Positions 20,936-42,055 of a stretch of DNA of 64,000 nucleotides are shown piece by piece (within the stretch, counting starts at the first letter, position 1; every line of letters starts with the position of its first letter). The stretch is taken from assembly GCF_902713615.1 (NCBI RefSeq), contig NC_052170.1:12696744-12760743 (forward strand), written 5' to 3'. The stretch is from Scyliorhinus canicula (lineage: Eukaryota). Under the pieces are notes generated by a model. It saw only the letters and a list, made by a program, of their open reading frames with translations. It did no database searches and had not been told where the DNA came from. The position numbers were made by a program, and so were the translations under genes.

Positions 20936-21328
20936 GGAAAATTGGTTGCAATGCTCAACTTACAAAGAAAGTTTCTGGTGTGCTGAAGGGAGATGTGACA
21001 ATCACCTGTAAGTATGCAGAGTCCATCCAGGCAACGACATTGCCACCCAAAGCGACCAGAGAAATCTCCATTGTGAGGTTGGCTGAGCAACATAATCTGC
21101 AATGGTTACATTATAAACATGACCATAAAGATGCCCAGGTCATAATCGACACCAGTATCGTACACCGATGTCCTACCCCTTCACGTTATTCAAATTCGAT
21201 GGGCTCCCTTCACACTGCCCAACTCCACATCAGAGGATTACTCGTGTCAGATGCTGGATTCTATTTCTGCGTCACAGTTAACAGCAAGCTTCAAAGAGAG
21301 CCTGATGCATCGCAGCTGGTTATCAAAG
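20936..21328 (+). CDS. IgSF receptor exon: V-set Ig domain
   Basis: Acceptor tttatattccag at 20935, donor AAAG|GTGAGT at 21329; 393 nt, phase 1-1, open frame. Motifs VTITC (B strand), LQW (C strand), AQLHIRGLLVSDAGFYFC (E/F strands, DxGxYxC). Confidence 0.88.
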
Positions 21329-21669
21329 GTGAGTGCAGGTCCGTTGAAGTCCGGTCCCCCATGGCGAGTGTGCGAGCATCACGTTCCCAATTTGGATTGA
21401 AGAGGGACTTGCAAAGTCGGGACTAACTCCGCCGAAAACAGAAAGATGCCTGGAACGCCACGACTGGTCCGGCAGTATCTGTGGAGAGGGAAAACTTTAA
21501 GAGTCACACGGTCTCCAAACGGTAACTCTGTTTCTCTCCCCACGATGCAAGTCCCCACTGACTTGCAGGGTGTTCCCGGCATCTTTCTGTATTATTTCAG
21601 ATTTCCAAAGTCTGCAGTGCGTTTCTTTTATTTTTTTGGAAATAACGTATCCCGGGATGATTGGATTTA

Positions 21670-22270
21670 AAAAAAAAAATTTTTATTAAGGTTTTCACAA
21701 AATATAAACAACAAAACAATATTAACAAAACAACCATGGTAAAAACCCAAGAACAACAACCACCCAACTACATAAGCAACTACTAAAACAAAAAAAAAGC
21801 AAACAACAAAAAGGAAAGAGATAACACCCGCCACATCCAACAAACCCATGTACACAATTCTCCCTCCCACCCAACCAAATCCCCCACTCCTCCCCCCCAG
21901 GTTGCTGCTGCTGCCGGCCTATTTCCCTACCGTTCCACCAGGAAGAACAGGAAAGGCTGCCACCGCCTACTGTACTGATCCCCTCAGGGCAAATTTCACC
22001 TCCAATTTGATGAACCCCGCCATATCATTGATCCAGGCCTCCACGCTTGGGGGCCTCGCATCCTTCCATTGAAGCAAGATCCTCCGCCGGGCTACTAGGG
22101 ACGCAAAGGCCAGAACACCGGCCTCTATCGCCTCCTGCACTCCCGGCTCCACTGCAACTCCAAAAATTGCGAGTCCCCAGCCTGGCTTGACCCTGGATCC
22201 CACCACCCTCGACACCGTCCTTGCTACCCCCTTCTTCCAAAACTCCCCCAGCGCTTGGCATGCCCAGGGA
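21670..22270 (-). mobile_element. L1-clade LINE 3' end
   Basis: LAFASLVARRRILLQWKDARPP..WINDMAGFIKLEVKFALRGS; AATAAA end. Confidence 0.8.
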
Positions 22271-23849
22271 TGATTGGATATTGGCGGACAGCCTCAGGTG
22301 TTGTCTGATGTCCATTAGTCCCAGGAACTGAGCTTTCAGTCCTCAGCACGCGAGTGGAAACAGCCTGGGCCTCCCATCCAATCTGTCAGTAAGAAAATGG
22401 ATCATCTGTTGCTGTACTGAATCCTTGAAGAGACCCATGTCAGCCCAAGAAGGCCTGTTTGACAGTGAACAGTTGAGCTCAATCCATTTTCCACCCAAAG
22501 TCCACACATTTTTTCTAGCAAGCCTCAGCCAAAGGCAGTCACAAGTGGCGATATTGTCTTGCCCCTTCCTGATCCAGTTTAATCCAATTCATTGTCCTCC
22601 CATCGCCGATTGCGACACTCCCTGGACAAGATGCAGCCAAGATGCATTAACCCTGTGGGCAGACCAGGTAATAAACCCAAACGCCTTCTTCACCTGCATT
22701 TCTCAGGAATTTCCTGAGGGATACAGCACAAGGAAGGGTTGGGGGTTTCGGCAAAGGTTGGTGTCAAACCCGGTACAGGTTTGGAGGGCCTGGGCTGTAT
22801 TGTTCTTTGTTCTCAGTTGCTCGCTGAATGAGGCGCTTAACATACAGGAATTGGGAATGATTTGTTGCCATTTCAAAAAAGTGGGCAAGATTGCCTCTCT
22901 CGTGTTTTTCTTTTTTGGGACGTTGTACGAGCGGGAAATCAGCTTGCTCCTCTTTCAGCTCGGGGAACAATGTAGGACGGATGCAGGGTGGGGGTAGCTC
23001 AGCTTACTTACAGAGTAGCCAGCTGACAGATAGAGACGAGGAAAGTCCTCCTATTTGATCCCTAGCCTGTACTGAGTTAGCTGTCAACTGTTGGAAAATG
23101 GGACCTTGGAATCCCTGACTTGGAAGGGGAAAATGGTGGATGGTTCCTGGTTATCCTCCCTATCTCTGTAATCGCCTCCATCCCCCTCAACTTCAATGCT
23201 CCTCCAATTCTGACCTCCTGTGCTTCCATGTCCCATTGTTGTGGCCGTGCCCTCAGCTGCCTCGGGCCTACGATTTGGAGATCTCTCCCTTAACCTAACC
23301 GCCATCTTATACCATTTTTTTCTTTAAAGGCACTCCTTAAAACCTCTTTCTTCAACCAATCTTTTGGCCACCCCTCCCTATATCTCATTGTGGGCCTGTA
23401 TCAAAGTTGGAAATTAAATTAAAATGAAAATCGCTTTTTGTCACGAGTAGGCTTCAAATGAAGTGACTGTGAAAAGCCCCTAGTCGCCACATTCCGACGC
23501 CTGTTCAGGGAGGCTGGTACGGGAATTGAACCGTGCTGCTGACCTGCCTTGGTCTGCTTTAAAAGCCAGCGATTTAGCCCAGTGTGCTAAACCAGCCCGA
23601 CGCACCCATGATACACCTTGGGATGCTTAACGATATAAAAAGTGCATTTTATAAATGTAGGTTGCTGTTGTCAGTAGCTGCCCATCAATCTGTGCAGGTC
23701 CGTCCGTGTGAGGACACATTCAACGTGGTTGTCGTCGAAGGCATGGAGCAACTCAATGTCTGCAAGCATCCATCAGGCTGTTTGGGTGAGGGTGCAGATG
23801 GGTACAATCGCCTGGCGTGACCCAGTACCTTTAGCGCAGGCTGGGATTA

Positions 23850-24620
23850 GAGCTGGTTAGGCCATCACTGGAATACTGCGTGCAGTTCTGGTCACCACAT
23901 TAGAGGAAGGAATTGACTGCACTGGGGAGGGTGTAGAGGAGATTCGCCAGGATGTTGCCTGGACTGGAGGCTCTGAGCTATGAGGAGAGATTGGTTATGC
24001 TTGAGGCTGTTTTCTTGGAGCAGTGAAGATTGAGAGGGGGGGGGGTCTGATAGAATGTATAAGCTTGTGAGTGGCATTGGAAGGGTCAATAACCAGGGGG
24101 CATAGAATTAAGGTAAGAGATAGAAGGCTAAGAGGGTAGTTGAGGAGAAATGTTTTCATCCAGAGGGTGGTGAGAGTTTGGAACTCGCTGCCTGAAAGGA
24201 TGATTGAGTCAGAAAACTGGTAAAATTTTAAAAGTACTTAGATCTTCACTTGTGGGCAGCACGGTGGTGCAGTGGGTTAGCACTGCTGCCTCACGGCGCC
24301 GAGGTCCCAGGTTCGATCCCGGCTCTGGGTCACTGTCCGTGTGGAGTTTGCACATTCTCCCCGTGTCTGCGTGGGTTTCACCCCCACAACCCAAAGATGT
24401 GCAGGCTAGGTGGATTGAATATGCTAAATTGCCCCTTAATTGGAAAAAATGAATTGGGTACTCTAAATTTTTTTTAAAAGATCTTCACTTGTGCTGCCGT
24501 AACCTCCAGGTCTACAGTGCTGGAAAATGGGATGAATGTAGTCAGGTATTTGTTGACCAGCATGGACACAATGGGCCAAATAGTCTCCTTCTCTGCATTT
24601 ATTAATCTATGAGAGACGAG
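23850..24620 (+). mobile_element. Degenerate CR1 3' fragment (SINE inserted at 24253)
   Basis: LEYC.QFWSP and FHPEGGESLELAA-like remnants. Confidence 0.75.
24253..24478 (+). mobile_element. Short A-tailed SINE with 15-bp TSD
   Basis: AGATCTTCACTTGTG on both sides. Confidence 0.92.
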
Positions 24621-24714
24621 AACTGATGCGACACAAGAGCAAATAACCGTTCTCAACTTTTGTATGGTATGAATGTTGTTAAATGCAAATCATGTACCTA
24701 ATTAGTTACGAATG

Positions 24715-24945
24715 TTTTTAAAAAATATATTTTAGAGTAACCAATTCCTCTTTTTTTTTCCAATTAAGGGGCAATTTAGCGTGGCCAATCCACCTACCCT
24801 GCACATCTTTGGGTTGTGGGGGTGAGACCCACGCAGACACGGGGAGAATGTGCAAACTCCACACGGGCAATAATCCAGGGCCGGGATCGAACCCGGGTGC
24901 TCAGCGGCGTGAGACAGTAGTGCTAACCACTGTGCCACCGTGCCG
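24715..24945 (-). mobile_element. Short A-tailed SINE with 13-bp or longer TSD
   Basis: CCTAATTAGTTAC (24697-24709 / 24946-24958). Confidence 0.9.
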
Positions 24946-25049
24946 CCTAATTAGTTACTAATATATGAGCTTATAGCCGGGGCCACAGTCGGAGCCAAGC
25001 TTCCGGCTCCACAAGTCCCCTAATTGTACAGGATGGGTGGAAGAGGGAA

Positions 25050-26270
25050 GGAAGAGTGATAGTGAGAGAGGATTCATTAGTGAGGGGAACAGACAAGCGT
25101 TTCTGCGGCTACAGGATGGTGTGTTTCCTCCCTGGGGCCAGGGTCAGGGATGTCGCTGATCGGATGTCAGTATCAGGCCCCCTCTCAATCTTCGCTGCTC
25201 CAAGAGAAACAGCCTCAAGCCGAACCAATCCCTCCTCATAGCTCATGGAAAAAAGGTGGAGGGCGATAGGTCAGAGGTCGTGGTACACGTTGGTGCCAAC
25301 GCGATAGGTAGAATGGACTCAGAACGCAAGGCAGCTGATTAAAAAGCAGGACCTCAAAGTTTGTTCTCTCTGGATTACTCCCAGTGCCACATGCTGGCGA
25401 GCACAGAAATAGCGGAAGAGGGGCAGATAAATGCATTGCTCAAGAGTTGGTGCAGGAGGAAGATTTATCGATTCCTGGATCATAGAACATAGAACAGTAC
25501 AGCACAGAACAGGCCCTCCGGCCCTCAATGTTGTGCCGAGCCATGATCACCCTACTCAAACCCACGTATCCACCCTATACCCGTAACCCAACAACCCCCC
25601 CTTAACCTTACATTTTAGGACACTACGGGCAATTTAGCATGGCCAATCCACCTAACCCGCACATCTTTGGACTGTGGGAGGAAACCGGAGCACCCGGAGG
25701 AAACCCACGCACACACGGGGAGGATGTGCAGACTCCACACAGACAGTGACCCAAGCCGGAATCGAACCTGGGACCCTGGAGCTGCGATTAAATAGAAATA
25801 GAACAGTACAGCACAGAACAGGCCCTTCGGCCCTCGATATTGTGCCGAGCAATGATCACCCTACTCAAACCCACGTATCCACCCTATACCCGTAACCCAA
25901 CAATCCCCCCCCCACCCTTAACCTTACTTTTAGGACACTACGGGCAATTTAGCATGGCCAATCCACCTAACCCGCACATCTTTGGACTGTGGGAGGAAAC
26001 CGGAGCACCCGGAGGAAACCCACGCACACACGGGGAGGACGTGCAGACTCCGCACAGACAGTGACCCAGCCGGGAACCGAACCTGGGACCCTGGAGCTGT
26101 GAAGCATTGATGCTAACCACCATGCTACCGTGCTGCCCGATTACTGCGATTGTTTCTGGGGAAGATGGGAGATGTACAAGCGGGACGGTCTGCACCTGAC
26201 CCAGAATGGGACCAACATCCTTGGGTTTGCTGGTGCTGTTTGGTGGAGTTCAAACTAGTTTGGCAGGGGA
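25050..26270 (+). mobile_element. CR1 ORF1 (SGNH/GDSL esterase-like) fragment interrupted by tandem SINEs
   Basis: DS.VRGTDKRFCG..MVCFLPGARVRDV, VVVHVGAN, DGLHL. Confidence 0.75.
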
Positions 26271-27870
26271 GGAGACACGGGCATTATCATAGATTATCAT
26301 AGAATTTACAGTGCAGAAGGTGGCCATTCGGCCCATCGAGTCTGCACCGGCTCTTGAAAAGAGCACCCTACCCAAAGTCAACACCTCCACCCTATCCCCA
26401 TAACCCAGTAACCCTACCCAAGGGCAATTTTGGACACTAAGGGCAATTTATCATGGCCAATCCACCTAACCTGCACATCTTTGGGCTGCGGGAGGAAACC
26501 AGAGCACCCGGAGGAAACCCACACACACACGGGGAGAACGTGCAGACGCCGCACAGACAGTGACCCAAGCCGGAATCGAACCTGGGACCCTGGAGCTGTG
26601 AAGCAATTGTACTATCCACAATACTACTGTGCTGCCCAAAAAGGACACAGTACACTACAGTAAAGGAACCAAGACAGAGGGAGTTCAGCCCTGTTGAGTT
26701 CCAAGGGAGTAAAGTGAAGCTGGATGGCCTCTAATTTAATGGTATGTATATTATAGGTCCATAGAATCCCTACAGTGCACAAGTAGGCCATTCGGCCCAT
26801 TGAGTCTGCACCAGCCTTGGAAAGAGCACTCTGTTTAAGCCCACGCGTCCACCCTATCCGCGTAACCCACCACCCCCAGTTAACCTTTTGGACACTAAGG
26901 GGCAGCCATTCCATCTAACCCGCACACCTTTGGACTTTGGGAAGAAACCGGAGCACCCGGAGGGAACCCAGGGAGACACGGGGAGAATGTGCAAATTCCA
27001 CACAGGCAGTGACCCAGGGCCGGGATCGAACTTGGGTCCTCAGCGCCGTGAGGCAGCGGTGCTAACCACTGCGCCAGTGTGCCACCCTGACAAGGGAGTA
27101 CTCGATGAATGGCAGGACACTAGGAAGTTCAGAGGAACAGCGGGATCTTGGGGTGCTTGTCCACAGATCCCTGAAGGCGGCAGGACAGATTAATAGCGTA
27201 GTTAAGAAAGCAGACGGGACACTTGCCTTTATCAGTCATGGCATAGAGCAGGGACGTTATGTTGGAGCTGTACAGGATCTTGGTTAGACCACAGCTGGAG
27301 TATTGTTCAGTTCTGGTCACCTCGCTTTAGGAAGGATGTGATTGCACTGGAGGGGGTGCAGAGGGGATTTATCAGGATGTTGCCTGGGATGGAACATTTG
27401 AGCGATGAAGAGAGACTGGTTAAGCTGGGGCTGTTTTCTTTAGAGCAGAGAAGACCGATGGGGGAATTTATTGAGTTGTGTAAGATTATGAGGGGTATGG
27501 ATAGCGTGGGATAGAAAGCAGCTGATCCTCTTACATAGAACATAGAACAGTACAGCACAGAACAGGCCCTTCGGCCCTCGATGTTGTGCCGAGCAATGAT
27601 CACCCTACTCAAACCCACGTATCCACCCTATACCCGTAACCCAACAACCCCCCCCTTAACCTTACTTTTATTAGGACACTACGGGCAATTTAGCCTGGCC
27701 AATCCACCTAACCCTCACATCTTTGGACTGTGGGAGGAAACCGGAGCACCCGGAGGAAACCCACGCACACAGGGGGAGGACGTGCAGACTCCACACAGAC
27801 AGTGACCCAGCCGGGAATCGAACCTGGGACCCTGGAGCTGTGAAGCATTTATGCTAACCACCATGCTAGT
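25482..27870 (-). mobile_element. Cluster of five same-orientation HE1-like SINEs (25482, 25795, 26290, 26760, 27537)
   Basis: Each has a tail, V-domain and head on the minus strand; the first two are head-to-tail. Confidence 0.88.
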
Positions 27871-28140
27871 TGAAGGGTCAATAACAAGGGGGCATAATTT
27901 TAAAGTGAGGGTCAGGAGGTTCGAGGGGATTTGAGGAAAGATGTTTCCACCCAGAGGGGTGCGGGAGTCTGGGACGTACTGCCCCCTGTCTGGGAGGGGA
28001 GTAGAGGCAGGAAACCTCACACCCGTTAAAAAGTACATGGATGACTTGAAATGTTCTAACCTTTAAGACTATTTGCTAGGAAGTGTTCGTCGGTGAAGAC
28101 TTGATGGGCTGAAGGACCTCTTTTGTGCTGTATGAATTTA
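27090..28140 (+). mobile_element. CR1 3' fragment (SINE inserted at 27537)
   Basis: QRDLGVLVHRSLK, VKKA.GTLAFI remnants and a 3' tail. Confidence 0.8.
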
Positions 28141-28207
28141 TGACTCAATGACTCTACTGCACAAGTCCATCAAAGTATTTTAATACTTTTCTCTTCTGTT
28201 GTTTAAG

Positions 28208-28507
28208 CTGTCTCAATTTCTGAGACTTGGTTCCTAACATCCCCGATGGAGGCGAACAAGCCGACGATTCTGCTCTTGAATGTGATCGGATTTTATCCAA
28301 ATAAGATTGAGGTGGATTGGCAGCTGGCTAAGAAACAGCTGCAAGGCAACCCTGTGTTATTGGCTAACCCTCATTGTGATGGAACCTTCAACGCTACGTC
28401 TATGATTGCATTTGTACCACAAGCAGACGATCACGATAAAACAGTTACTTGCCACATCACTCATGAATCTGCAAAGGTATCGATGACTCTAAGGCTCCAG
28501 GTTTTAT
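28208..28507 (+). CDS. IgSF receptor exon: C1-set Ig domain (B-strand Cys replaced by Leu)
   Basis: Acceptor ttctcttctgttgtttaag, donor T|GTAAGT at 28508; 300 nt, phase 1-1. Motifs GFYP, VDW, DGTF, VTCHITH are C1-set hallmarks. Confidence 0.87.
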
Positions 28508-28689
28508 GTAAGTGCTGCACAGATAGAACAACCAATTCTCCCTTCTTGGAGCTGACTCTTTGCTCGATACATAGGATCATAGAATCCCTAGAGTGCCGAA
28601 GGAGGCCATTCGGCCCATCGAGTCTCTGAAAGAGCACCCTACCTAGGTCCGCTCCGGCTTCCACTCCGCCCTATCCCATAACCGAACCT

Positions 28690-29870
28690 TTTTTTAAAAA
28701 ACTATTTTATTGAGTCATTTATATGTATACACATCAAACACAACCATAAAACAAGACAAACAGGGCTGCAAATAATCAAAACCACTAAAATACCTAACAC
28801 CCCACTATCCTGTCTCCCACACTGCAGCTCCTCTACCTCATTTTTAATCCCCCTACCCACTGCGGACATCTTAAAAGTTTTCAAAGAAGTCGATGAGCGG
28901 CCGCCATCTCCGGTCAAACCCCTTCACAGACCCTCTCAAGGCAAACTTTATCTTTTCCAGCCTGAGGAACTCTGCCCGGTCGCTCACCCAAACTCCTGGT
29001 TTTGGAGGCCCCGAGTCCCGCCATTCCAATAAGATCCGTCTCCGGGCTACCGGGGAGGCAAAGGCCAAGACCACCGGCCTCCCTCGACCCCTGGACTCCC
29101 GGGTCTTCTGACGCTCCAAAGATCGCCATTTCGGGACTCGGGACCACCTTCACCTTCAAGACCTCCGACATAACGTCGGCAAAGCCCTGCCAGAATGCCC
29201 CAACCTTTGGACACGCCCAAAACATATGGACATGATTCGCGGGCCCACCAGAGCACCGACGACACCTATCCTCCACCCCTTCAAAAAACCTGCTCACCCG
29301 GCCCACAGTCACGTGCACCGCCTTTAACTGAATACGGCTGAGCCTAGCACACAATGAGGATGCCTTCACCCTCGTCAAAACCTCTTCCAATGGGCAGCAC
29401 GGTGGCGCAGTGGTTAGCACTGCTGCCTCACGGCGCCGAGGTCCCAGGTTCGATCCCGGCTCTGGGTCACTGTCCGTGTGGAGTTTGCACATTCTCCCCG
29501 TGTCTGCGTGGGTTTCACCCCCACAACCCAAAGTTGTGCAGGCTAGGTGGATTGGCCACGCTAAATTGCCCCTTCATTGGAAAAATTAATTGGGTGCTCT
29601 AAAAAATTTTTTAAAAACCTCCTCCCACAGCCCAGCCTCCACCTCCCTCCCCAACTCTTCCTCCCACGTACGCCTCACTACCTCTATCGGGGCTCCCTCC
29701 CAGTCCATCAATTCCTTATATATTTCCGACATTTTACCCTCAGCTTCTCCGGTTATTGACACCATCTTGTCCTGTAGCCTCTGGGGTGGCAGGTGGGGCA
29801 AGGACGGCACCTGCTTACTTACAAAATCCCTCACCTGTAAATACCGGAACCCATTCCCAGCGGGCAACTC
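28690..29870 (-). mobile_element. L1-clade LINE 3' fragment (SINE inserted at 29392)
   Basis: FRYLQVRDFV, CSGGPANHVHMFWACPK, LEKIKFALRGSV..F.RRWRP. Confidence 0.82.
29392..29612 (+). mobile_element. Short A-tailed SINE inside an L1 fragment
   Basis: Imperfect TSD AAAACCTC(T/C)TCC. Confidence 0.88.
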
Positions 29871-29879
29871 AAATTCCTA

Positions 29880-30105
29880 TCCCGGAACCTAACCTGCACA
29901 TCCCTGCACACTAAGGCAAATTTATCACGGCCAATCCGCCAAACCCTCACATCTTTGGACGGTGGGAGGAAACCGGAGCACCCGGAAGAAACCCACGCAG
30001 ACATGGGGAGAAAGTGCAAACTCCGCACAGTGACCCAAAGCCGGAATTGAACCTGGGTCCCTGGTGCTGTGAGGCAGCAGTGCTAACCACTGTGCCATCA
30101 TGCCA
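29880..30105 (-). mobile_element. HE1-like SINE (older)
   Basis: Head and V-domain. Confidence 0.8.
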
Positions 30106-30249
30106 CCAATTAGCCCTGGCACGCACCAAATATTTTCTTGAGTCTTTATCATGTCGTGAGTTCTTGCGATCTGGAATGCGTCACCTGAAGGGGCGATGGA
30201 AGCAGATTCAATCCTATCTTTCAGGAGGGAGTTAGTTATGGACTTGAAA

Positions 30250-30473
30250 GGGCAGCACGGTGGCGCAGTGGGTTAGCACTGCTGCCTCACGGCGCCGAGG
30301 TCCCAGGTTCGATCCCGGCTCTGGGTCACTGTCCGTGTGGAGTTTGCACATTCTCCCCGTGCCTGCGTGGGTTTCGCCCCCACAACCCAAAGATGTGCAG
30401 GCTGGGTGGATTGGCCAAGCTAAATTGTCCCTTAATTGGAAAAAATTAATTGGGTACTCTAAATTTAAAAAAA
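30250..30473 (+). mobile_element. Short A-tailed SINE with 16-bp TSD
   Basis: AGTTATGGACTTGAAA (30234-30249 / 30474-30489). Confidence 0.93.
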
Positions 30474-31236
30474 AGTTATGGACTTGAAAACTACCAGCCC
30501 TGTGGGAGAACCAACAAGCACCTGGATTGCATCTCCATCTCTCATTGCCACTTTTCTAAGGGCAATTAAGGATGGGCGATAAACTTTGGCTTTGGCAGTG
30601 ATGCCCACTTCCCATTAAAAAAATATTTTGAAAAGAATTTTCTGGGGGAAGAGAAGGTGAAGGGGGAGTGAAACCGATTGGATGGCTCTGCCAAAGAGCC
30701 ATCCTATGCGTGATGGCCCGAATAGCCTCTTGTACTGATCCGTGACCTTCCCCGAGTGGCCAATCTTTACCTGAGGACAGTGAGCTATCCAACAGTGGGG
30801 AGGGGGGAATAACATCGCCAAGTCCAATCCTACTTTGGAAGCTGGGATTCCTGGATAATGACCTAGGACCTCGGCTGATTCTTCCCTTTCCTAGCTAAGC
30901 GGCACTGAGGCCAACTCCAGCACCATTCATGCTGCCCTCGCTAGGATTGCCTCACTCAGCACCGAGTTGACATCAGGCGGACAAGGTCCTTTTGGTCCGT
31001 TTGGCTCGTTACCAGGCTGAGGAATGATTCTGCCACCAGACTAGAGAAAAGTTACTGATAGCCACTGCTTTAATCAGGAGGTGGGCCCTTCCAGTCTCCC
31101 TGGACAGGCGCCGGAATGTGGCGACTAGGGGCTTTTCACAGCAACTTCATTGAAGCCTACTCGTGACAATAAGCGATTTTCATTTCATTTTCATTTCATT
31201 TCCTCAACCTTTTCTTCCAATGCTGTTTCCTGACAG

Positions 31237-31512
31237 ACGCTCCTCTACCTCTCACGGTGCAACCGCAGGAGGACTTTGCGAAGATGGAAGGTGACCTGCT
31301 CGAGCTGCGATGTATATCCAAAAGCAACCCTGTTGCTAAAATGTCTTGGATCCTCAATGGAAAAGTTTTGCTGGCCAAGACAACAACTCATTTGAGGATC
31401 AGAGTGGTGAACGTTTCACTCAGTGACCAAGGGAATTACAGCTGTTCTGCGGAGAACAGTCTGGGAACAAGAACTTCATCGGTGGCGGTCAACGTGATTG
31501 GCCTGCAACCCG
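31237..31512 (+). CDS. IgSF receptor exon: C2/I-set Ig domain
   Basis: Acceptor ctgtttcctgacag; splicing to the C1 exon creates the linker VL-Y-AP. Motifs LRC, SNP, SW, DQGNYSCSAENSLG. Phase-1 donor taken as G|GTTTGT at 31513, so the 3' end is less certain. Confidence 0.82.
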
Positions 31513-31875
31513 GTTTGTATCTATTGGCTTTGCACCGAAGACATCTCAGGTTTATCATATAACCCTACAATACGGAAAGAGGCTATTTGGCCTCATGTCG
31601 TTGCACTGCCTCCCTGAAAGAGCTACCAATTAGTTTCCTCCCATTCACTTCTCCCAACGCCCAGAATCGGACACAATTTTATTTTTTCCCATTTATATTT
31701 CTTTTCGATTGCCTCCTCCCAGAAGCGAGATTTATTTAACAGGTAACAGTGCTGGACACCCTCTGGCACCTCAGTCGGGCGGTAGTGGTAGCACAGTGGT
31801 TAGCATTGTTGCTTCACAGCACCAGGTACCTGAGTTTGATTCCGGCTTGGGTCACTGACTGTGCGGACCCTGCAC

Positions 31876-31906
<31 letters not shown>

Positions 31907-31924
31907 GTGGGTTTCCTCCGGGTG

Positions 31925-32760
31925 AACAAAGAACAAAGAAAAGTACAGCACAGGAACAGGCCCAACGGCCCTCCAAGCCTGTGCCAACCATGCTACCCGA
32001 CTAAGCTACAATCTTCTACACTTCCGGTGTCTGTATCCCTCTATTCCCGTCCTATTCATGTATTTGTCAAGATGCCCCTTAAATGTCACTATTGTCCCTG
32101 CTTCCACTACCTCCTCCGGCAGCGAGTTCCAGGCACCCACTACCCTCTGTGTAAAAAACTTGCCTCGTACATCTCCTTCTCCACCTGTGTTGCCCCTTTC
32201 AGTGACCTGTGGACCTGTACACCTAGATCTCTCTGACTGTCAATACTCTTGAGGGTTCTACCATTTACTGTATATTCCCTACCTGCATTAGACCTTCCAA
32301 AATGTATTACCTCACATTTGTCCGGATTAAACTTCATCTGCCATCTCTCTGCCCAAGACTCCAAACAATCTAATTCCTGCTGTATCCTCTGACAGTCCTC
32401 ATCGCTATCCACAATTCCACCAACCTTTGTGTCATCTGCAAACTTACTAATCAGACCAGTTACATGCTCCTCCAAATCATTTATATATACTACGAACAGC
32501 AAAGGTCCCAGCACTGATCCCTGCGGAACACCACTAGTCACAGCCCTCCAATTAGAAAAGCACCTTCCATTGCTACTCTCTGCCTTCTATGACCTAGCCA
32601 GTTCTGTATCCATCTTGCCAACTCACCCCTGATCCTGTTTGACTTCACCCTTTGTATCAGTCTGCCATGAGGGACCTTGTTAAAGGCCTTACTGAAGTCC
32701 ATATAGACAACATCCACTGCCCTACCTGCATCAATCATCTTTGTGACCTCCTCGAAAAAA
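31925..32760 (-). mobile_element. CR1 RT fragment with 3' tail (internally deleted)
   Basis: VDVVYMDFSKAF.KVPH, SGVPQGSVLGPLLF, KFADDTK. Confidence 0.92.
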
Positions 32761-33454
32761 AACAAAAAAACGGGTGCTCCGGCTTCCTCCCACAAGTCCC
32801 GATAGACGTGCTGTTAGGTGAATTGGACATTCTGTATTCTCCCTCAACGTACCCGAACAGGCGCTGGAGTGTGGCAACTCGGGGATTTTCACAGTTACTT
32901 CATTGCTGTGTTAATGTAGGCCTACTTGTGCCAATAATATAAATTATTAGAATAATGGAATTCAGGTCTTATCAGTGCTTCCAGGAGAAAAGAGAAACAA
33001 ATTGGTTTCAGAAGTGACTTGATAAGTCTGCATGTTGAAAGCGTTAGACGAAGGGAGCTGGAGCGAGGCTTGTGCGACACGTAAACGCCTGTAATTAATT
33101 TGTAATACGTGGAATAGAAAAGAAAGGACAAAGGAGTTGCTTTCATGTCGGATCTCTCACTACCTAAAGCACTTCAAGGTCGAACAATAGTGTTGTAAAG
33201 TGGAGAACGCAGGAGCCAATTTGCGCACAGCAGTTCTCACTGACAGCAATGTGATAAATGACCCAGATGCCCTGTTTTGGTGATGTTGACTGAGGGGTAA
33301 ACATTTGCGAGGACATAGAACATAGAACATAGAACAGTACAGCACAGAACAGGCCCTTCAGCCCTCGATGTTGTGCCGAGCTTTGTCCGAAACCAAGATC
33401 GAGCTATCCCACTCATATCCCTGTCATAGGTGTGGAATGTGTTTAATAATAATA

Positions 33455-33800
33455 TTTTATTAAGGTATTTGAAATGTTTTATAACAGTAACATAAACAAT
33501 AACATCAACATGGTAAAATAAATATTCCCCCCCCCAGCCCAATCTTCACGCACCTCAACCGTACAACAACAATCCCCCCTCCCACCCCCGGAATACTGGA
33601 TCTGCTGACATTTTAATTTTTCCCGAGGAAGCTGACGAACGGCTGTCACCTCCGGGAGAACCCGACCATTGACCCTCTTGAGGCAAACTTTATTTTCTCG
33701 AGGCTGAGGAACCCAGCCATGTCACTAACCCAGGTCTCCACACTCGGGGCTTCGAGTCCCTCCACATTAATAAGATCCGTCTCCGGCTTAGCAGGGATGC
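33455..33800 (-). mobile_element. L1-clade LINE 3' end
   Basis: Homologous to the 21670 and 28690 copies; AATAAA end. Confidence 0.7.
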
Positions 33801-34009
33801 AAAGGCCAAGACGTCAGGGAATCATCCCCAGCTCTTCCTCAAAGTCTTGCCGTGAGATCTTTTATGTCCTCCCTGAGGGAGCAAACGGAGCCTCGGTTTA
33901 ACATGTCATTCAATCAGACGACATCTCCCACAGTGCAGCGTTTCCGCCTGCCCCGCACGGGGGTGTCCACATCGTTTCCTTTTGCTGCTCAAGATCCTGG
34001 AGTGAGTCT

Positions 34010-34385
34010 TGAACCTTCAACCTTGTGACCCAGAAGTGAAACGGAGCTTTCGCTGACAGGGTTGAATGACAAACCCCCTGTGGTAGGGGCGGGATGCTTT
34101 CACCAGGCGCGCGCGATCTGGCCGGTAGAAGTGCGGCTTGCACTCCGCACAGACCTGGCAGTCTCTGGTGACTGTCATTACTTCCTCGACGGAGTAGGGC
34201 AGATTGCGGGCTTTGACCAGATGGTACAAGCGAGTGACCCCCGGATGGCAAAGGCTCTCGTGCAAGGCACGGAGCTGGTTCACTTGTGCACTGGCACATG
34301 TACCTCGGGAGAGGGCGTCTGGGGGCTCGTTGAGCTTGCCGGGGCGATACAAGATCTCGTAATTATAGGCGGAGAGCTCGATTCT
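34010..34385 (-). mobile_element. Gypsy pol fragment (RNase H end and integrase zinc finger)
   Basis: RWRIELSAYNYEILYRPGKLNEPPDALSR, then H..CHPG...CQVC. Confidence 0.88.
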
Positions 34386-34774
34386 CCACCGCAAGATTTT
34401 TTCATTCTTGATTGCGCTACACCCCGGTACCAGCCTCCCCGAACAGGCGCCGGAATGTGGCGACTAGGGGCTTTTCACAGTAACTTCACTGAAGCCTACT
34501 TGTGGCAGTAAGTGATTTTCTTTTCATTTCATTTCAAACTATGCAGTGAAGAAGCAGGCCATTCGGCCCAGCTGGTCTGTGATAACCCTCACAAAGCCCA
34601 CAGGGGATCCGTCGATTGATCTCCTGATGGGGCTCGTGCAGGACGAGTGCTCAGATTGAGCAGGAGCAAGCCGGTCCAACAGGGGCTCACTAGCGGGAAA
34701 TTAAGCACTGTGACCCAGACTCGGACTGGCAGTTCCCAATGGTCCGGGGCTGGGGCAAGAGCATTGTCCCAGGA

Positions 34775-35100
34775 CAACACGGTGGCACAGTGCTTAGCAT
34801 CGCTGCCTCACTGCGCCAGGGACCCGGGTTCGATTCCGGCCTTGGGTGACTGTCTACGTGGAGTTTATACATTCTCCCCGTGTCTGCGTGGGTTTGCTCC
34901 GGGTGCTCCGGTTTCCTCCCACAGTCCAAAGATGCGCAGGTTAGGTGGATTGGTCACAATAAAATTGATCTGTAGGTTAGGTGGGGTTACGGGGGTAGAG
35001 TGGGGGAGTGGGCAAAGGTCTAGGTAGGGTGCTCTTTCAGAGGGTGAGCAGACTCGAAGGGCTGAATGGCCTCCTTCTATACTGTAGGGATTCTATGGTT
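34775..35100 (+). mobile_element. HE1-like SINE
   Basis: Head, V-domain, tail GGGATTCTATG. Confidence 0.85.
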
Positions 35101-35369
35101 CCACGGTTGTAAGCTGTGGCTTTATTCATGGAAAGGCCTGCACTGCAGTTGTTACATGGCCAATGCTAGTGTTTAATGAGTCTCGTTCCACCCCACTTCA
35201 CCCCACCGCTATCAAAATATCCTGATCCCTTCTTCCTCGTGAGTTTATCCAGTTCCCCCTTAAGCGCGTTGGTGCTTCACGTCTCACCCACTTCCCCTGG
35301 TAGCAAGTTCCACATTCTAACCACTCTCCAAGTGCAGAGGTTCCTCCTGAATTCCTGTTTGTGCTGCAG

Positions 35370-35461
35370 GTGCGACTGATGAACAAACGTGGCTCGCCGC
35401 TGGTATCAGCATCGGTGTGGTGCTCCTCCTAATCATTGTGACATCCGTTGCCGCGTACGCT
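35370..35461 (+). CDS. IgSF receptor exon: transmembrane segment
   Basis: Acceptor cctgtttgtgctgcag, donor GCT|GTAAGT; phase 1-0; encodes (G)ATDEQTWLAAGISIGVVLLLIIVTSVAAYA, hydrophobic with no charged residue in the helix. Confidence 0.82.
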
Positions 35462-36519
35462 GTAAGTACCTTTCTGACCACCATCAGCCCCCGCCCGGTG
35501 TGTGGCGTCAACTTGCTTCTGAAGTGACTTCACCTTTCTCGGCAAGTCCCACAAGCAGCGGACGGCAACAATATTCGGGCAGGCGCTGCGGAGAAAACGG
35601 TAAAAATGGGGGAGGGGGGGGAAGAATACTGGTCTGAACTGGTCTTGTATACCTCACAAGATGGAACACCAGTAAAGAGCAGGAGGTTAGAATACTGGTC
35701 TGAACTGGCCGCATGCACCTCAAAGTGGAACACTGGTCTTAGAATGCGAGTCTCAACTGGTTCCGTATTCCTTAAAAAGGAACGTCAGTAAAAACTGGGT
35801 CATAAGAATATTGGGTTTGAACTGTTTCCGACTGGGCCTTAAGCAGGTCAGGCAGCAGCTGCGCAGGAACAGAATCAGGCGCTTGACGCTTAAGGCCCTC
35901 AGACTATTGTCCCGCGGCCTGAAACCTTGGCCGGCTGACATCTTGTTGCTCTGCAGGCCTGACTCCTGAGCATCTGTTTACAATGAGGTCGGCCAGATCT
36001 GTCAATCGCGGTTGACCCTATTTCATTTTTTTTCAGTTCGTAAGAAAGCGTAGACTGGCAGGGCGGCAGGCGGAAGAACCAGTATACGTGGTGAGTGTGA
36101 ATGAGGGAACGCAAAGCTCATCTGGGACCTCCAGACATGACTTGCAATCAGAGACATTCTGTTAATCGCCCCTTTGACTGTCCGTGCTGTAATCCTGGGA
36201 CCAACATGGCGATGACCCGCTCCAAGTGAAAGACTTCACTGAGTCCTTGTTGGTTTGTTTTCCAGACCCTGTCCTTCTCCCCGGATTCAGCCAATCCGTT
36301 TGCAACCTTGGTGTCGCGTTCAACCCCATGATGGACGCCTAGCCTCATCGCCTGCTCGGCTGCTGCCTCTGTTGGGCTCGATTATTCCAACCCACTCTTG
36401 GCTGGTCTCCCACATTCTAACCTCTGTAAACTGGAGATCACCCAAACCTCTGCTGCCGGTGTCTTACCACGCTGCAAATCCCGTTCCCCTGTCACCCCTG
36501 AGCTCGCAGAACCATGGGG

Positions 36520-36830
36520 TGGCACAGTGGTTAGCACTGCTGCATCACGGCGCGGAGACCCGGGTTCGATTCTGGCCTCGGGCGAATGTCAGTGTGGAGC
36601 CTGCACGTTCTCCCCGTGTCTGCGTGGGGCTTTCCTCTGAGTGCTCCAGTTTCCTCCCACAGTCCAAGGATATGCGGGTTAGGTGGATTGGCCACGCTGA
36701 ATTGCCCCTTAAGTTGTGTTGCAGGAATAGGGCGGGGGATTTGGCCAACGTAGGGTGATCTTTCGAAGAGGCGGTGCAGACTCGATGGGCCAAATTACCT
36801 CCTTCTCCATTGTAGGGATTCGATGATTCT
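36520..36830 (+). mobile_element. HE1-like SINE (diverged)
   Basis: Head, V-domain, tail. Confidence 0.8.
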
Positions 36831-37119
36831 ATTCTGACTCCTGGTTTAAAGATTTGCATTTTGGTTTTCAAATCCCTTCCTACTCTCGCCCTTCCCCCCC
36901 CCCCCCCCCTCCTTGATCTCCTCCAGCCCCATAACCCTCCAAGACAATTGTGCACCTCTAATTCTGGCCTCTCACGCATTCCCAATTTTGCTGGGTTTTA
37001 TCCTCCGTTTACTCCCTCTCAAACCCGTCGATGGTTGCTGAGGTGCAGTTGCACAGCTGGTTGCCCTGGTACCTCAACCAATTGGCCGCACTTCATGTGA
37101 TAACCAAGAGAGTGCATGT

Positions 37120-37570
37120 TAGAACATAGAACATAGAACATTACAGCGCAGTACAGGCCCTTCGGCCCTCAATGTTGTGCCGTCCTGTGAAACCCCTCTC
37201 AAGCCCATCTACACTAGTCCCTTATCGTCCATATGTCTATCCAATGACCATTTGAATGCGTTTAGTGTTGGCGAGTCCACTACTATTGCAGGCAGGGCAT
37301 TCCACGCCCTTACTACTCTCTGAGTAAAGAACCTACCTCTGACATCTGTCCTATATCTATCTTCCATCAATTTAAAGCTATGTCCCCTCGTGCTGGACAC
37401 CACCATCCGAGGAATAAGGCTCTCACTGTCCACCCTATCTAATCCTCTGATCATCTTGTATGCCTCAATTAAGTCACCTCTTAACCATCTTCTCTCGAAC
37501 GAAAACAGCCTCAAGTCCCTCAGCCTTTCCTCATAAGATCTTCCCTCCATACCAGGCAACATCCTGGTAA
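37120..37570 (-). mobile_element. CR1 3' end with (TTCTATG)n-type tail
   Basis: FTRMLPG..SYEERL..L.LFS, FFTQRVVRAWNALP. Confidence 0.9.
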
Positions 37571-38112
37571 AAAAAACGGGTTGTTTGACCTTAGTCTGGA
37601 AGTGCGTCAATTTTTTAAAATTCCCATAATGTTTTCAAACCCCTCCATGGCCTTGGCCCTCCTCGCTATCTGTGTAATCTCCTGTAGCTCCCGCAACCCT
37701 CTGAGATCTCGGTGTTCCCCCAATTCTTGCATCTTGCGTATCCTCAGATTTTAAACATACCGCTGGTGGCCATTAGCTGTCACGAGCCCCAAGCGCCGGA
37801 ACTTCTGACTTAACCTCTCTCTATCTCTCCCATTCGAGGACATTCTTTCAAATCCACCACTTTGACCAAGTTTTTAATCGCCTCGAATATCTGTCTGAGT
37901 GCTTTAAGTGTCAAATGTTCTATGATAACGTGACACACCTTGGGATGGTTCACTAGGTCAAAGGTGTTATGTCTGTGGAAGCCATATGGTTCCCATCTTG
38001 ATTCTGAATGCGGCCCACAGGACATTTTGTTGACCGTTGCCCAGGCGCAGGGTCGCCACATTCTGCTGATTCCCATCTATGTAGATTTTTCCTACCACTC
38101 TGACTGAAGCAG

Positions 38113-38139
38113 TTCACACGTAAAACGAAGGTGAATGAA
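38113..38139 (+). CDS. IgSF receptor micro-exon: basic juxtamembrane stop-transfer peptide FTRKTK(VNE)
   Basis: Acceptor ttttcctaccactctgactgaagcag; phase 0. Donor either AAG|GTGAAT (38130) or GAA|GTGAGG (38139). Supplies the basic residues expected after a TM helix. Confidence 0.5.
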
Positions 38140-38404
38140 GTGAGGTGTGTGCTGTTTGCTCACAACATCGACTGTGAGAGCCGTGAGCGCCAATCAAAAC
38201 GTCAATATTTATTATATTTTTGCCATTTGAAGTTGATGACAGTTCTGTTAATATATAAATGATTAAGCTTTTTCTATAACTCGTTAGGAAATATTTACCC
38301 TGTATTAAATGTATTTAATCTTATCCATGGGGTCACGGTTAGTGAACGAGCCCCGATTTCAACCTTGCGGCCCACTGAGATGGAGGAGGGTCACTCCTGC
38401 GGCC

Positions 38405-38590
38405 CACTCACTGGCCCAGGTTGCACACTCACTGGCCCAAGTTGCACACTCACTGGCCCAGCTCGCACACTCACTGGCCCAGGTTGCACACTCACTGGCC
38501 CAGGTTGCACACTCACTGGCCCAAGTTGCACACTCACTGGCCCAGCTTGCACACTCACTGGCCCAGGTTGCACACTCACTTGCCCAGTTG
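38405..38590 (+). repeat. 21-bp tandem repeat (~9 units, CACTCACTGGCCCAGGTTGCA)
   Basis: Directly visible. Variant order G,A,C,G,G,A,C,G suggests an 84-bp higher-order duplication. Intronic. Confidence 0.95.
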
Positions 38591-39074
38591 TTTTTTAAAT
38601 GCCAGGTCGGGTGGGGGAGTTGAGAGGAGGGAGGGGTTCACCATCAAATCTGATCTTGGAATCAGGCAATGTCCAGCCAGTGTCTGGATAAATCTGGTTC
38701 CATGCCCAATACGGTTTTCCGTTGTTAATATTAGGGATGACCTTTTACCCCCTCAGGTGGCCTTGAGGTTATTGCCTTGGTACAAGTTTCCTTCCTGTTT
38801 TTGGATGAGAGCTGAGTCTCAGATCTGTTGGCCATGCATCGTCAGGGGAGACTTTACATAATCAGTGTCAATTATTGGATACTTAACATAAATGAGACAC
38901 TATGGGATTAAGCCCATTACCGATAAGCCTTCCTGCCACTGAACAGGAAGTGGTGCATATTTTGAAGGGGACATGATAGGGGGACAAGGGGAAACGAGAT
39001 GGGGTTAACACTTCCGTCCGACGTAGCTATGACAAGGCCATAATTCCAAATGGTTATGTCTTTCTTCCTTTAAG

Positions 39075-39149
39075 GCGCCGTCACAACCAACTGCTGACGT
39101 CTACGAGACTCTGAATGTGGCTGATTCCCAGAAGCCCAGCACCCAAAAG
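39075..39149 (+). CDS. IgSF receptor cytoplasmic exon with YETL motif
   Basis: Acceptor tctttcttcctttaag, donor AAG|GTAACT; 75 nt, phase 0-0; APSQPTADVYETLNVADSQKPSTQK. Confidence 0.72.
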
Positions 39150-39884
39150 GTAACTAAGAGCGGACAGGAGCTGATGGGTGCGGGCACGGGGAGGTGTTGC
39201 TGGTGGGTGCCAGGGTGTGAGTCCAGGCTATTCCGTCCTCTGAGCAGTTTGAGACAGCTTTGAGCAGAGCCGCTCACCTGTCATGGGAGAGCAAAGTACG
39301 AGGACATTGGGGTGGAAAGGTATTTAACAGGGCATAGTTTGGGTGCATTATTCTGGTTGGGGGTGGGGGAGAAAGTGGATCATGTTTCAAAGTGTTGGTT
39401 CTAACGGTACGGGGCGGCACGGTGGTTAGCACTGTTATACATTTAGCTGCTGTTGTATAAAGAGTCAAAGGTTCTGCTCCTTTTCCAGAAACACCTTTAA
39501 TTTACTTCAACAGACTCTGCACAAAACATCACATCACCTGGCACAAAGGCCACCTGAAGCCCCTTTACATAATCAGTGTCAATTATTGGATACTTAACAT
39601 AAATGAGACAACTCATTGGAATGTCTCTTAACCCATTACTTAACAAGCACAGTGCCAGGGTCCCAGGATCGATTCCCGGTTTGGGTCACTGTCTGTACGG
39701 AGTCTGCATGTTCTCCCTGTGTCTGCCTGGGTTTCCTCCGGGCGCTCCAGTTTCCTCCCACAAGTCCCGAAATTCGTGCTTGTTATGTGCATTGGACATT
39801 CTGAATTCTCCCTCTGTGTACCCGAACAGGCGCCGGAGTGTGGCGACTAGGGGCTTTTCACAGTAATTTCATTGCAGTGTTAAT

Positions 39885-40282
39885 CTGCATATGATATGCA
39901 GATAATGATATACAGACAGGCAGCTAATGAACGCAGAGAACAGGACATGGCCAATGAGCAGGCAGGACACTCAGGGGTGGTATCTCACTATAAAAGGCAC
40001 GAGGCACTCACACTCCGCCTCTTTCCACTGATGAACATCTACAGAGTGAGTCAGGGTGTATGTACAGTATCACACCTCCAGCACGTGGCTAAGAGCTAGT
40101 CTGGTTCAGTCAGACAGAGTAACCACACTTAGGTCAGCAGAGAGTCGAACTCACAGAGAACTGTGCTAACTGCGCTACTGGTTCAATAAATCAGATTGAA
40201 CTAACTTCAAGATCTGGAGCATCTTTTGGTCAAAGCTGCATCCAGTTGCAGCCTGTGTTATCTCAGAGTACATAACCCAACA
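39885..40282 (+). mobile_element. Solo LTR-like element in the last intron of the receptor gene
   Basis: CCAAT ~39951, TATAAAA 39989, AATAAA 40185, 3' end CCCAACA like the LTR at 4780-5177; splits a SINE tail; 5' end has the palindrome ATCTGCATA-TGA-TATGCAGAT. Confidence 0.7.
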
Positions 40283-40552
40283 AATGTAAGCCTATGTGTG
40301 CCAATAATAAAGATTATTATTATTCAGCGCGCGGGGCTGGATTGGGTACAGTTTTTGCAGATGGATGTCTGAACGATGATGAGGTAGGGAGGGTTGGATT
40401 CTGCACAGTACATTTTCCTGGAATCTTGCTGCTTGGGGAAGCTCCTCATCTTCCATCTGATCCAGAGACTAAAAGGGGATTGTGAAACACTGAACTGGCA
40501 AGACTGTGGGCACGATCATCTCAGTGACCTCTGCTTTTTATTTTGTTTTAAG

Positions 40553-40600
40553 GTGCATGATGCCATTTATGCAAACACTGAGCAAATCGGGAAGCTTTAA
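40553..40600 (+). CDS. IgSF receptor terminal coding exon with YAN motif
   Basis: Strong acceptor ctgctttttattttgttttaag; phase 0; VHDAIYANTEQIGKL then TAA. Confidence 0.72.
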   Translation: MHDAIYANTEQIGKL

Positions 40601-40606
40601 TGTAGT

Positions 40607-42055
40607 GCCACGGGAGGCATTACCAAGGTAAGCCAAGAGGAGGCATTACCAAGGTAAGCCAAGGGGAGGCATTACCAAGGTAAGTCATGGGGAGGCATTA
40701 CCAAGGTAAGCCAAGGGGTGGCATTACCAAGGTAAGCCAAGGGGAGGCATTACCAAGGTAAGCCAAGGGGTGGCATTACCAAGGTAAGCCACGGGAGGCA
40801 TTACCAAGGTAAGCCAAGGGGAGGCATTACCAAGGTAAGCCAAGGGGAGGCATTACCAAGGTAAGCCAAGAGAGGCATTACCAAGGTAAGCCATGGGGAG
40901 GCATTACCAAGGTAAGCCATGGGGAGGTATTACCAAGGTAAGCCATGGGGAGGCATTACCAAGGTAAGCCATGGGGAGGCATTACCAAGGTAAGCCAAGG
41001 GGAGGCATTACCAAGGTAAGCCATGGGGAGGCATTACCAAGGTAAGCCATGGGGAGGTATTACCAAGGTAAGCCATGGGGAGGCATTACCAAGGTAAGCC
41101 AAGGGGAGGCATTACCAAGGTAAGCCAAGGGGAGGCATTACCAAGGTAAGCCATGGGAGGCATTACCAAGGTAAGCCAAGGGGAGGCATTACCAAGGTAA
41201 GCCATGGGAGGCATTACCAAGGTAAGCCAAGGGGAGGCATTACCAAGGTAAGCCAAGGGGTGGCATTACCAAGGTAAGCCACGGGAGGCATTACCAAGGT
41301 AAGCCAAGGGGAGGCATTACCAAGGTAAGCCAAGGGGAGGTATTACCAAGGTAAGCCAAGAGAGGCATTACCAAGGTAAGCCATGGGGAGGCATTACCAA
41401 GGTAAGCCATGGGGAGGTATTACGAAGGTAAGCCAAGGGGAGGCATTACCAAGGTAAGCCATGGGGAGGCATTACCAAGGTAAGCCATGGGGAGGTATTA
41501 CCAAGGTAAGCCAAGGGGAGGTATTACCAAGGTAAGCCAAGAGAGGCATTACCAAGGTAAGCCATGGGGAGGTATTACCAAGGTAAGCCAAGGGGAGGCA
41601 TTACCAAGGTAAGCCAAGGGGAGGCATTACCAAGGTAAGCCACGGGAGGCATTACCAAGGTAAGCCATGGGAGGCATTACCAAGGTAAGCCAAGGGGAGG
41701 CATTACCAAGGTAAGCCAAGGGGAGGCATTACCAAGGTAAGCCAAGGGGAGGCATTACCAAGGTAAGCCATGGGAGGCATTACCAAGGTAAGCCAAGGGG
41801 AGGCATTACCAAGGTAAGCCATGGGAGGCATTACCAAGGTAAGCCAAGGGAGGCATTACCAAGGTAAGCCATGGGAGGAATTACCAAGGTAAGCCAAGGG
41901 GTGGCATTACCAAGGTAAGCCAAGGGGAGGCATTACCAAGGTAAGCCATGGGAGGCATTACCAAGGTAAGCCAAGAGGAGGCATTACCAAGGTAAGCCAA
42001 GGGGAGGCATTACCAAGGTAAGCCAAGGGGAGGCATTACCAAGGTAAGCCAAGGG
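40607..42055 (+). repeat. 26-bp minisatellite array (~55 units, GGCATTACCAAGGTAAGCCAAGGGGA and variants)
   Basis: Directly visible tandem array; invariant core with quasi-palindrome TTACC-AA-GGTAA; variable part AAGGGG/ATGGGG/ATGGG/ACGGG/AAGAG. Unit count estimated from length. Confidence 0.97.

Follow-up and report, generated by a model that had tools for sequence, protein, structure and literature searches.

In a 64,000-nucleotide window of the genome of the catshark Scyliorhinus canicula (contig NC_052170.1, positions 12,696,744 to 12,760,743 of the forward strand), an eight-exon gene was found on the plus strand at 17797-40600, whose coding sequence of 1302 nt encodes a protein of 433 amino acids (splice sites located manually and with a script). 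The gene is real, spliced and expressed, and it carries a misleading automatic name in the public annotation: it encodes an uncharacterised, shark-restricted receptor of the immunoglobulin (Ig) superfamily that is predicted in RefSeq under the wrong name. From its N-terminus, the protein consists of a signal peptide, a germline-complete V-set domain, a classical C1-set domain, an I-set/C2 domain, an uncharged transmembrane (TM) helix and a cytoplasmic tail of 56 residues. Taken together, the evidence makes it probable that this is a single-copy gene for a type I membrane glycoprotein that has so far been found in sharks only.

The exons for V, C1 and C2 were first traced as three large open frames by open reading frame (ORF) listing and Pfam scans. 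Exons 2-7 are bounded by AG acceptors and GT donors, and the reading frame is open through all eight exons. The spliced translation is identical to the protein P0027, a RefSeq/Gnomon model from assembly GCA_902713615.2, at 433 of 433 residues (100% identity), and exon 1 matches its residues 1-21 exactly. At NCBI, P0027 is named "cell adhesion molecule 3-like [Scyliorhinus canicula]". An earlier note on this DNA, made from the sequence alone, had described seven exons with AG/GT ends and phases 1-1, 1-1, 1-1, 1-0, 0-0, 0-0 and 0-stop as a complete-looking gene that was unclassified and hidden among repeats. All seven exons, their ends and their phases were re-derived here, and its reading of V-set, C1-set and C2/I-set domains, an uncharged TM helix and the sequons NAT (214), NVS (311) and NYS (319) was borne out by Pfam and sequence analysis, with a tail of 56 residues in place of about 50. 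The gene was nevertheless incomplete as described, since the leader exon lies upstream of the range that the note covered; and while the gene is indeed inconsistently named, it was not hidden, being already a RefSeq prediction. Another stretch considered as leader exon (18269-18377) was rejected, as the start of P0027 matched at 17797 instead. The coding sequence makes up 5.7% of the 22.8-kb gene.

Transcription was assessed in two same-species runs labelled 'RNA?' (X1 and X2), available as contigs, and in two further oligo-dT runs as raw reads. All sampled 31-mers from the C1 exon (100%) are present in X1 and X2, but only 27% of those of a 1001-nt stretch comprising this 300-nt exon and flanking intron, versus 44-77% in DNA runs, indicating that the C1 exon is carried without introns in X1 and X2. 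When RNA contigs were aligned to positions 34970-36500, the joint 35461->36037 (GT..AG) was seen directly in a 1765-nt contig of X1 and in a 497-nt contig of X2. Furthermore, in both runs the contigs overhang on either side, before 35369 with the final 30 nt of exon 4 (C2) and behind 36091 with the first 30 nt of exon 7 at 39075. One direct joint and two equal overhangs thus support three consecutive junctions, from the C2 exon to the second cytoplasmic exon, so that RNA linking exons of this gene, on which the earlier note had made its reading depend, is present in both runs. The TM exon begins at position 1001 of the X1 contig, which would fit the V, C1 and C2 exons (969 nt) and part of the leader upstream of it.

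Pfam C1-set (PF07654) scores 36.8 bits on the second domain (cut-off 21) and passes in 6/6 full-length orthologs; C2-set_2 (PF08205), the nectin/CD80-type domain, also exceeds its own cut-off with 34 bits versus 36.8 for C1-set. In PDB searches with the single sequence and with the family profile, the best 60 matches were all classical C1 domains, namely Ig constant domains, UrIg2 (the second-best match), the alpha3 domain of class I major histocompatibility complex (MHC-I) molecules, IgM and the third domains of SIRPalpha and SIRPgamma; nectin, CADM, CD80 and CD22 were absent from these 60. The profile scored 50 bits against SIRPalpha domain 3, which gave the longest alignment, and about 50 bits against MHC-I alpha3. 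An AlphaFold2 (AF2) model of the domain alone reached a predicted local distance difference test score (pLDDT) of 83.7. The top Foldseek matches of this model were MHC-II alpha2/beta2, beta2-microglobulin, MHC-I alpha3 and SIRP domain 3 at template-modelling scores of 0.80-0.81, and its top 50 likewise consisted of classical C1 domains, with no nectin, CADM or CD80 domain in the list. In the Atlas, the clusters closest to it consist of SHPS-1/SIRP C1 domains. A homolog search limited to the C1 region gave 13 candidates, of which the protein itself was the only match.

Classical C1 domains have been defined by a B-C loop that begins with (F/Y)(F/Y/H)P, by xVxH after the F-strand Cys and by a 13-residue spacing between the B-strand Cys and Trp (Hatherley 2009, PMC2785349). 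Domain 2 carries FYP, DGTF and CHITH, the sequon NAT at 214 and an extra Cys209 before DGTF. FYP is invariant in 7/7 sequences; in CHITH the Cys, the Ile standing for Val and the last His are invariant; and 13 residues separate Leu176, at the Cys position, from Trp190. The canonical B-F disulfide is the exception: the B-strand Cys is replaced by Leu in 7/7 sequences (Leu176) and the F-strand Cys is kept. Pfam, the PDB profile search, the predicted fold and the published sequence hallmarks thus agree with the earlier note that domain 2 is, as far as sequence and model can tell, a true classical C1-set domain. With Leu in all seven sequences, the domain has been without its B-F disulfide throughout the history of the family, and the shark orders concerned split more than 200 million years ago. 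Loss of the core disulfide has hence not kept a C1 domain from being retained across shark orders. Such classical C1-set domains characterise the adaptive immune system and occur in Ig, T-cell receptors (TCR), MHC, beta2-microglobulin, tapasin and SIRP (PMC2785349).

The V exon encodes the entire domain including the G strand (...EPDASQLVIK) and splices directly to the C1 exon. Besides the canonical cysteine pair C46/C133 it has extra cysteines at 26 and 100, and its B-C loop is 31 residues long, a conserved feature. A J-type GxG/FGxG motif is absent from the G strand; recombination signals were not searched for. In the PDB, the V domain has weak matches at best, to the V domains of Ig lambda and TCR and within frameworks 2 and 3. 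Exhaustive HMMER searching of 1.84 billion representatives with the V exon gave 25 matches at E<=1e-3, three of which are true relatives, all from sharks. SIRP V domains were found neither among the 72 PDB matches of the V profile nor among these 25. The V-C1 pair as a whole aligns with Ig lambda light chains over their full length (profile positions 63-251 to chain residues 22-209). The V domain thus appears, by its sequence, to be an orphan and non-rearranging one.

The third domain is matched by Pfam I-set, Ig_2 and ig (E ~1e-14) and has no C1-set match. It bears an LQVLYAP linker, an SNP motif and the sequons NVS and NYS, of which the first, N(V/I/A)S, is kept in 6/6 orthologs, and its closest named relatives in the PDB search and BLASTP are CD22, CEACAM and contactin repeats. 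A domain combination of a classical C1 followed by an I-set/C2 domain is one for which we found no earlier description. The TM helix is uncharged, with a Kyte-Doolittle maximum of 2.68 over residues 359-377. Behind it, the tail contains three conserved tyrosine motifs, EEP(V/L)Y, DVY(E/D)TL (YxxL) and (I/V)Y(A/E)N (YxN, of the Grb2-SH2 type). P390 and Y392, in the exon 6 motif, are invariant in the alignment, and DVY(E/D)TL and YxN are each kept in 5/5 full-length tails. By regular-expression scan, no immunoreceptor tyrosine-based activation motif (ITAM) or switch motif (ITSM) occurs in any ortholog tail, and the inhibitory motif (ITIM, [SIVL]xYxx[IVL]) is absent in 5/6 species, the sole match being a lineage-specific duplicated VVYDTL in Pristiophorus.

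In the catshark, houndshark and lamniform sequences (Scyliorhinus, Mustelus, Cetorhinus and Carcharodon), one extra cysteine lies in the C''-D loop of the V domain (C100 in S. canicula) and another in the D-E loop of the C1 domain (C209); Heterodontus and Pristiophorus have neither. By standard Ig topology, the two loops would face the V-C1 interface, so that an interdomain disulfide between them is plausible.

Orthologs were searched for with a basking-shark query and a six-sequence profile, including a word-indexed search of 5.8 billion proteins, and were found in six other sharks, Cetorhinus, Carcharodon, Heterodontus, Mustelus, Pristiophorus and S. torazame (partial model), with one gene per species and a mean pairwise identity of 50-58% per domain. 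Their automatic names disagree: "CADM3-like" in Cetorhinus and Carcharodon, "CADM1-like" in Heterodontus, "Siglec-12" in Mustelus and "Siglec-8" in Pristiophorus. The next-best matches after the shark orthologs are CD22-like proteins and sialoadhesin of teleosts and birds (E 1e-21 to 1e-10), which run through C2 repeats only, at 24-33% identity; the Siglec/CD22 labels are thus explained by the resemblance of domain 3 to CD22 repeats. No one-to-one ortholog of a named vertebrate gene was found, either by HMMER among the 1.84 billion representatives or among the 5.8 billion proteins, and a literature search found no published description of this receptor family, which PMC12227049, PMC2785349 and PMC10751288 do not mention either. 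The earlier note had proposed a chondrichthyan-specific family without a named one-to-one ortholog and had pointed to other sharks and rays for relatives. Restriction to a lineage holds, as do the lack of a named counterpart in protein searches and the existence of shark relatives, but the range is narrower, being so far sharks (Selachii) only, with no ray ortholog in the protein databases. The RefSeq names of the shark orthologs are mutually inconsistent best-hit labels and are unfit for functional inference in shark transcriptomics.

Several variants were noted among the ortholog models. In Pristiophorus japonicus (P0011/P0030), isoform X2 lacks the entire C1 exon, a skip that stays in frame because the exon is of phase 1-1. 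Isoform X2 of Mustelus asterias (P0029) stops after the first tyrosine, its short C-terminus being a different one. In Pristiophorus, the V domain is without both canonical cysteines and has Cys79 and Cys91 instead, and the tail contains a duplicated VYDTLKRDEPKEPSAPAK unit.

Could one of the automatic names nonetheless be right? NCBI names in four species would make the protein a nectin/CADM (Necl) molecule that serves cell-cell adhesion via V-domain trans-dimers, which we consider quite improbable. The shark protein does share with these molecules the three-domain V-C-C layout, the V..Y.P (VxYxP) linker and Ig exons of phase 1-1, its domain 2 passes the C2-set_2 cut-off, and nectin-1 domains 2-3 align at 53 bits; apart from these, the names themselves are the argument. 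Yet the names are best-hit labels, as orthologs in other species are called Siglecs, and sequence similarity is weak; the 60 best PDB matches of the full-length profile include no CADM structure. CADM and nectin tails have a cytoplasmic FERM-binding motif and a C-terminal PDZ-binding motif. The shark tail has neither, ending in QIGKL in S. canicula, as the earlier note had observed of the PDZ-type end, and in TLQN, AIED, TKDS or PTTA in others. Domain 2, whose best 60 PDB and top 50 fold matches are all classical C1, has FYP, DGTF, CxIxH and the 13-residue spacing, whereas nectin/CD80-type domains lack classical C1 features (PMC2785349). The names in Mustelus and Pristiophorus suggest instead a Siglec/CD22-family lectin binding sialic acid, and this we regard as very unlikely. 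CD22 and sialoadhesin are indeed the next-best database matches after sharks, the membrane-proximal domain with its LxVxYAP linker and SNP...W / GxYxCxAxN motifs is like the C2 repeats of CD22, and the tail YxN reads YENV in two species, recalling the Grb2 site in the CD22 tail. This similarity is however confined to the C2 domain, and Pfam Ig_CD22 (PF24518) matches 0/6 members. Siglec V-set domains bind sialic acid through a conserved F-strand Arg; here the F strand reads GFYFC-V (S-V in Pristiophorus), with Val after the F-strand Cys and no Arg at or beside the position in 6/6 sequences, the absence already remarked on in the earlier note, and the V domain keeps the canonical B-F cysteines. 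Moreover, domain 2 is C1-set, which to our knowledge is the case in no Siglec, and the tail is without conserved ITIMs.

A highly diverged shark SIRP ortholog, its third domain replaced or remodelled from a V-C1-C1 layout, would account for a non-rearranging V domain directly before a classical C1, for the type I membrane topology, for an uncharged TM helix and a multi-tyrosine tail, for the SHPS-1/SIRP clusters nearest to the C1 domain, for the 50 bits and longest alignment of SIRPalpha domain 3 and for the highest fold scores of the third domains of SIRPgamma and SIRPbeta (0.80-0.81). However, MHC and Ig constant domains score equally well with the C1 domain, no specific V similarity was detected in either the PDB or the exhaustive V search, and the shark V domain is without a J-like GxG. 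The third domain is I-set/Ig_2 by Pfam and not C1, in agreement with the earlier note, which had remarked that the second C1 of SIRP is lacking; the shark C1 has no B-F disulfide, and the tail holds no conserved ITIM. We thus judge SIRP orthology to be unlikely. That the gene is decaying or non-functional, with the C1 disulfide lost and the RefSeq model merely computational, has in its favour the missing B-strand Cys, the two RNA runs without reads on the exons and the Pristiophorus isoform model that skips the C1 exon. Against this stand the open frame over eight exons with consensus splice sites, the spliced RNA contigs in two runs, the Leu-for-Cys replacement kept in 7/7 sequences alongside all other C1 hallmark residues, and the confident AF2 model of the C1 domain; decay is largely refuted by these observations and has hardly any probability left.

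The reading that we prefer, a single-copy receptor so far found only in sharks, describes a mosaic, because the V-C1 unit aligns with lambda light chains and the third domain and YAP linker are CD22-like. With Ig lambda, UrIg, UrIg2 and PRARP it shares the V-C1 unit and VL-like V frameworks 2 and 3, and with UrIg a germline-joined gene (PMC12227049). It differs from this group in having no J-type FGxG, in the added CD22-like C2 domain, the membrane anchor and the signalling-type tail, and in its single C1 domain, which is without its disulfide; UrIg and UrIg2 have constant domains of the C1 type only and form disulfide-linked dimers. The Ig-domain exons (V, C1 and C2) are all of phase 1-1. On a bolder and rather doubtful view of its origin, the gene would be all that survives, in sharks only, of an ancient non-rearranging V-C1 lineage that had branched close to Ig light chains and SIRP and later gained a CD22-type C2 exon by phase-1 shuffling. 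Nearly all C1 domains pair in cis, and on the same view the disulfide-free C1 would still do so, making the receptor a homodimer or one chain of a pair with a partner. If true, the shark protein would offer a present-day model of an antigen-receptor-like molecule from before rearrangement. Each non-rearranging V-C1 gene informs how antigen receptors were assembled (PMC12227049, PMC10751288).

As to function, a ligand would be bound by the V domain, whose 31-residue B-C loop is conserved, and C1 and C2 might serve as a stalk. A Src-family kinase would phosphorylate the tail, whereupon YxN could dock Grb2-type SH2 adaptors and YxxL could dock SH2 proteins (Src-family, SHP) or the endocytic adaptor AP-2. 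Because the TM helix is uncharged and no ITAM is present, the receptor would be expected to signal via its own tail and not through DAP12- or FcRgamma-type partners.

Several points weigh against a functional, shark-only receptor of this kind. Ray, chimaera, carpet-shark and bony-vertebrate orthologs were absent from protein-database searches, which could reflect missing annotation or strong divergence. Expression is not ubiquitous, as the two oligo-dT raw-read runs gave zero reads on the exons, and the junctions supported by RNA are those on the path from C2 through TM to the first and second cytoplasmic exons. The joint gain of the paired cysteines is a single evolutionary event, which makes their co-occurrence weak evidence, and the full-length AF2 model, at a pLDDT of 54.7, is too poor to judge the domain arrangement or the V-C1 interface. 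The tail motifs are short and could be trafficking signals instead of signalling sites. Finally, while gene structure, splicing, domain identity and conservation have been demonstrated, topology, glycosylation, ligand binding and signalling are properties that we infer.

Exons of the shark receptor gene (positions in the 64,000-nucleotide window)
Feature	Position	Strand	Phase	Content
Exon 1, leader	17797-17860	+	0-1	Donor GTACGA; ATG, signal peptide MNSLARSLLFWHMSVTSLYST and first base of Gly22
Exon 2, V	20936-21328	+	1-1	Whole V-set domain by Pfam
Exon 3, C1	28208-28507	+	1-1	Classical C1-set domain by Pfam
Exon 4, C2/I	31237-31512	+	1-1	Membrane-proximal I-set/C2 domain, Pfam I-set/Ig_2
Exon 5, TM	35370-35461	+	1-0	Short stalk and uncharged helix IGVVLLLIIVTSVAAYA
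Exon 6, cytoplasmic 1	36037-36090	+	0-0	Stop-transfer RKRR and tyrosine motif EEPVYV
Exon 7, cytoplasmic 2	39075-39149	+	0-0	Second tyrosine motif ADVYETL (YxxL)
Exon 8, coding part	40553-40600	+	0-stop	Acceptor TTATTTTGTTTTAAG; third tyrosine motif AIYANT (YxN), then stop

Downstream of the receptor gene, by 14 kb and tail-to-tail with it, lies a Tctex-family dynein light chain gene on the minus strand, with its last exon running from about 54671 to between 54955 and 55075. A Tctex-1 motif search gave no match; the exon showed up in a listing of ORFs. Its PDB matches are Chlamydomonas outer-arm LC2 (64.6 bits), DYNLT2B (45) and DYNLT1 (25); because LC2 and DYNLT2B outscore DYNLT1, the neighbour is of the Tctex-2/LC2 type and not Tctex-1, so that the earlier note was right about the gene and wrong about its type. 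In Heterodontus francisci, a Tctex-family gene encoding 212 amino acids lies 4 kb downstream of the ortholog on the opposite strand. The synteny for which the note had called is thus kept, and this common neighbour supports the orthology of the Heterodontus and catshark genes.

The introns of the receptor gene are filled with Deu-SINE-like repeats (SINE, short interspersed nuclear element), of which 17 copies, 72-95% alike, lie within 17797-40600 (one at 29401-29600, core 29468-29517); 42 BLAST matches were obtained across the whole window. In intron 4, the segment 35022-35125 reaches a contig word depth of up to ~29,000 and in each of the four runs is partly matched by many RNA reads whose ends are loose on both sides; this suggests a dispersed repeat that is abundantly transcribed and does not belong to the receptor gene. 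Intron 6 contains a tandem repeat at 38405-38587 (21 nt x 8.7 copies, 93% matches) with long repetitive open frames on both strands. The 3' untranslated region (UTR) of exon 8 extends downstream of 40600. There, 12 nt past the receptor stop codon, begins a tandem array at 40612-42055 (26 nt x 56 copies, 93% matches), each unit of which holds CAAGGTAAGC, a near-consensus 5' splice site, and, judging from the length of the X1 contig, the 3' UTR would run on into this array and end about 490 nt beyond the stop. Further downstream, open frames at 48329-48985 (+) and 43488-44024 (-) resemble, by eye, fragments of retroelement reverse transcriptases (e.g. ...FPYLDNVTICG..., ...RFFTQRVV..WNALP...).

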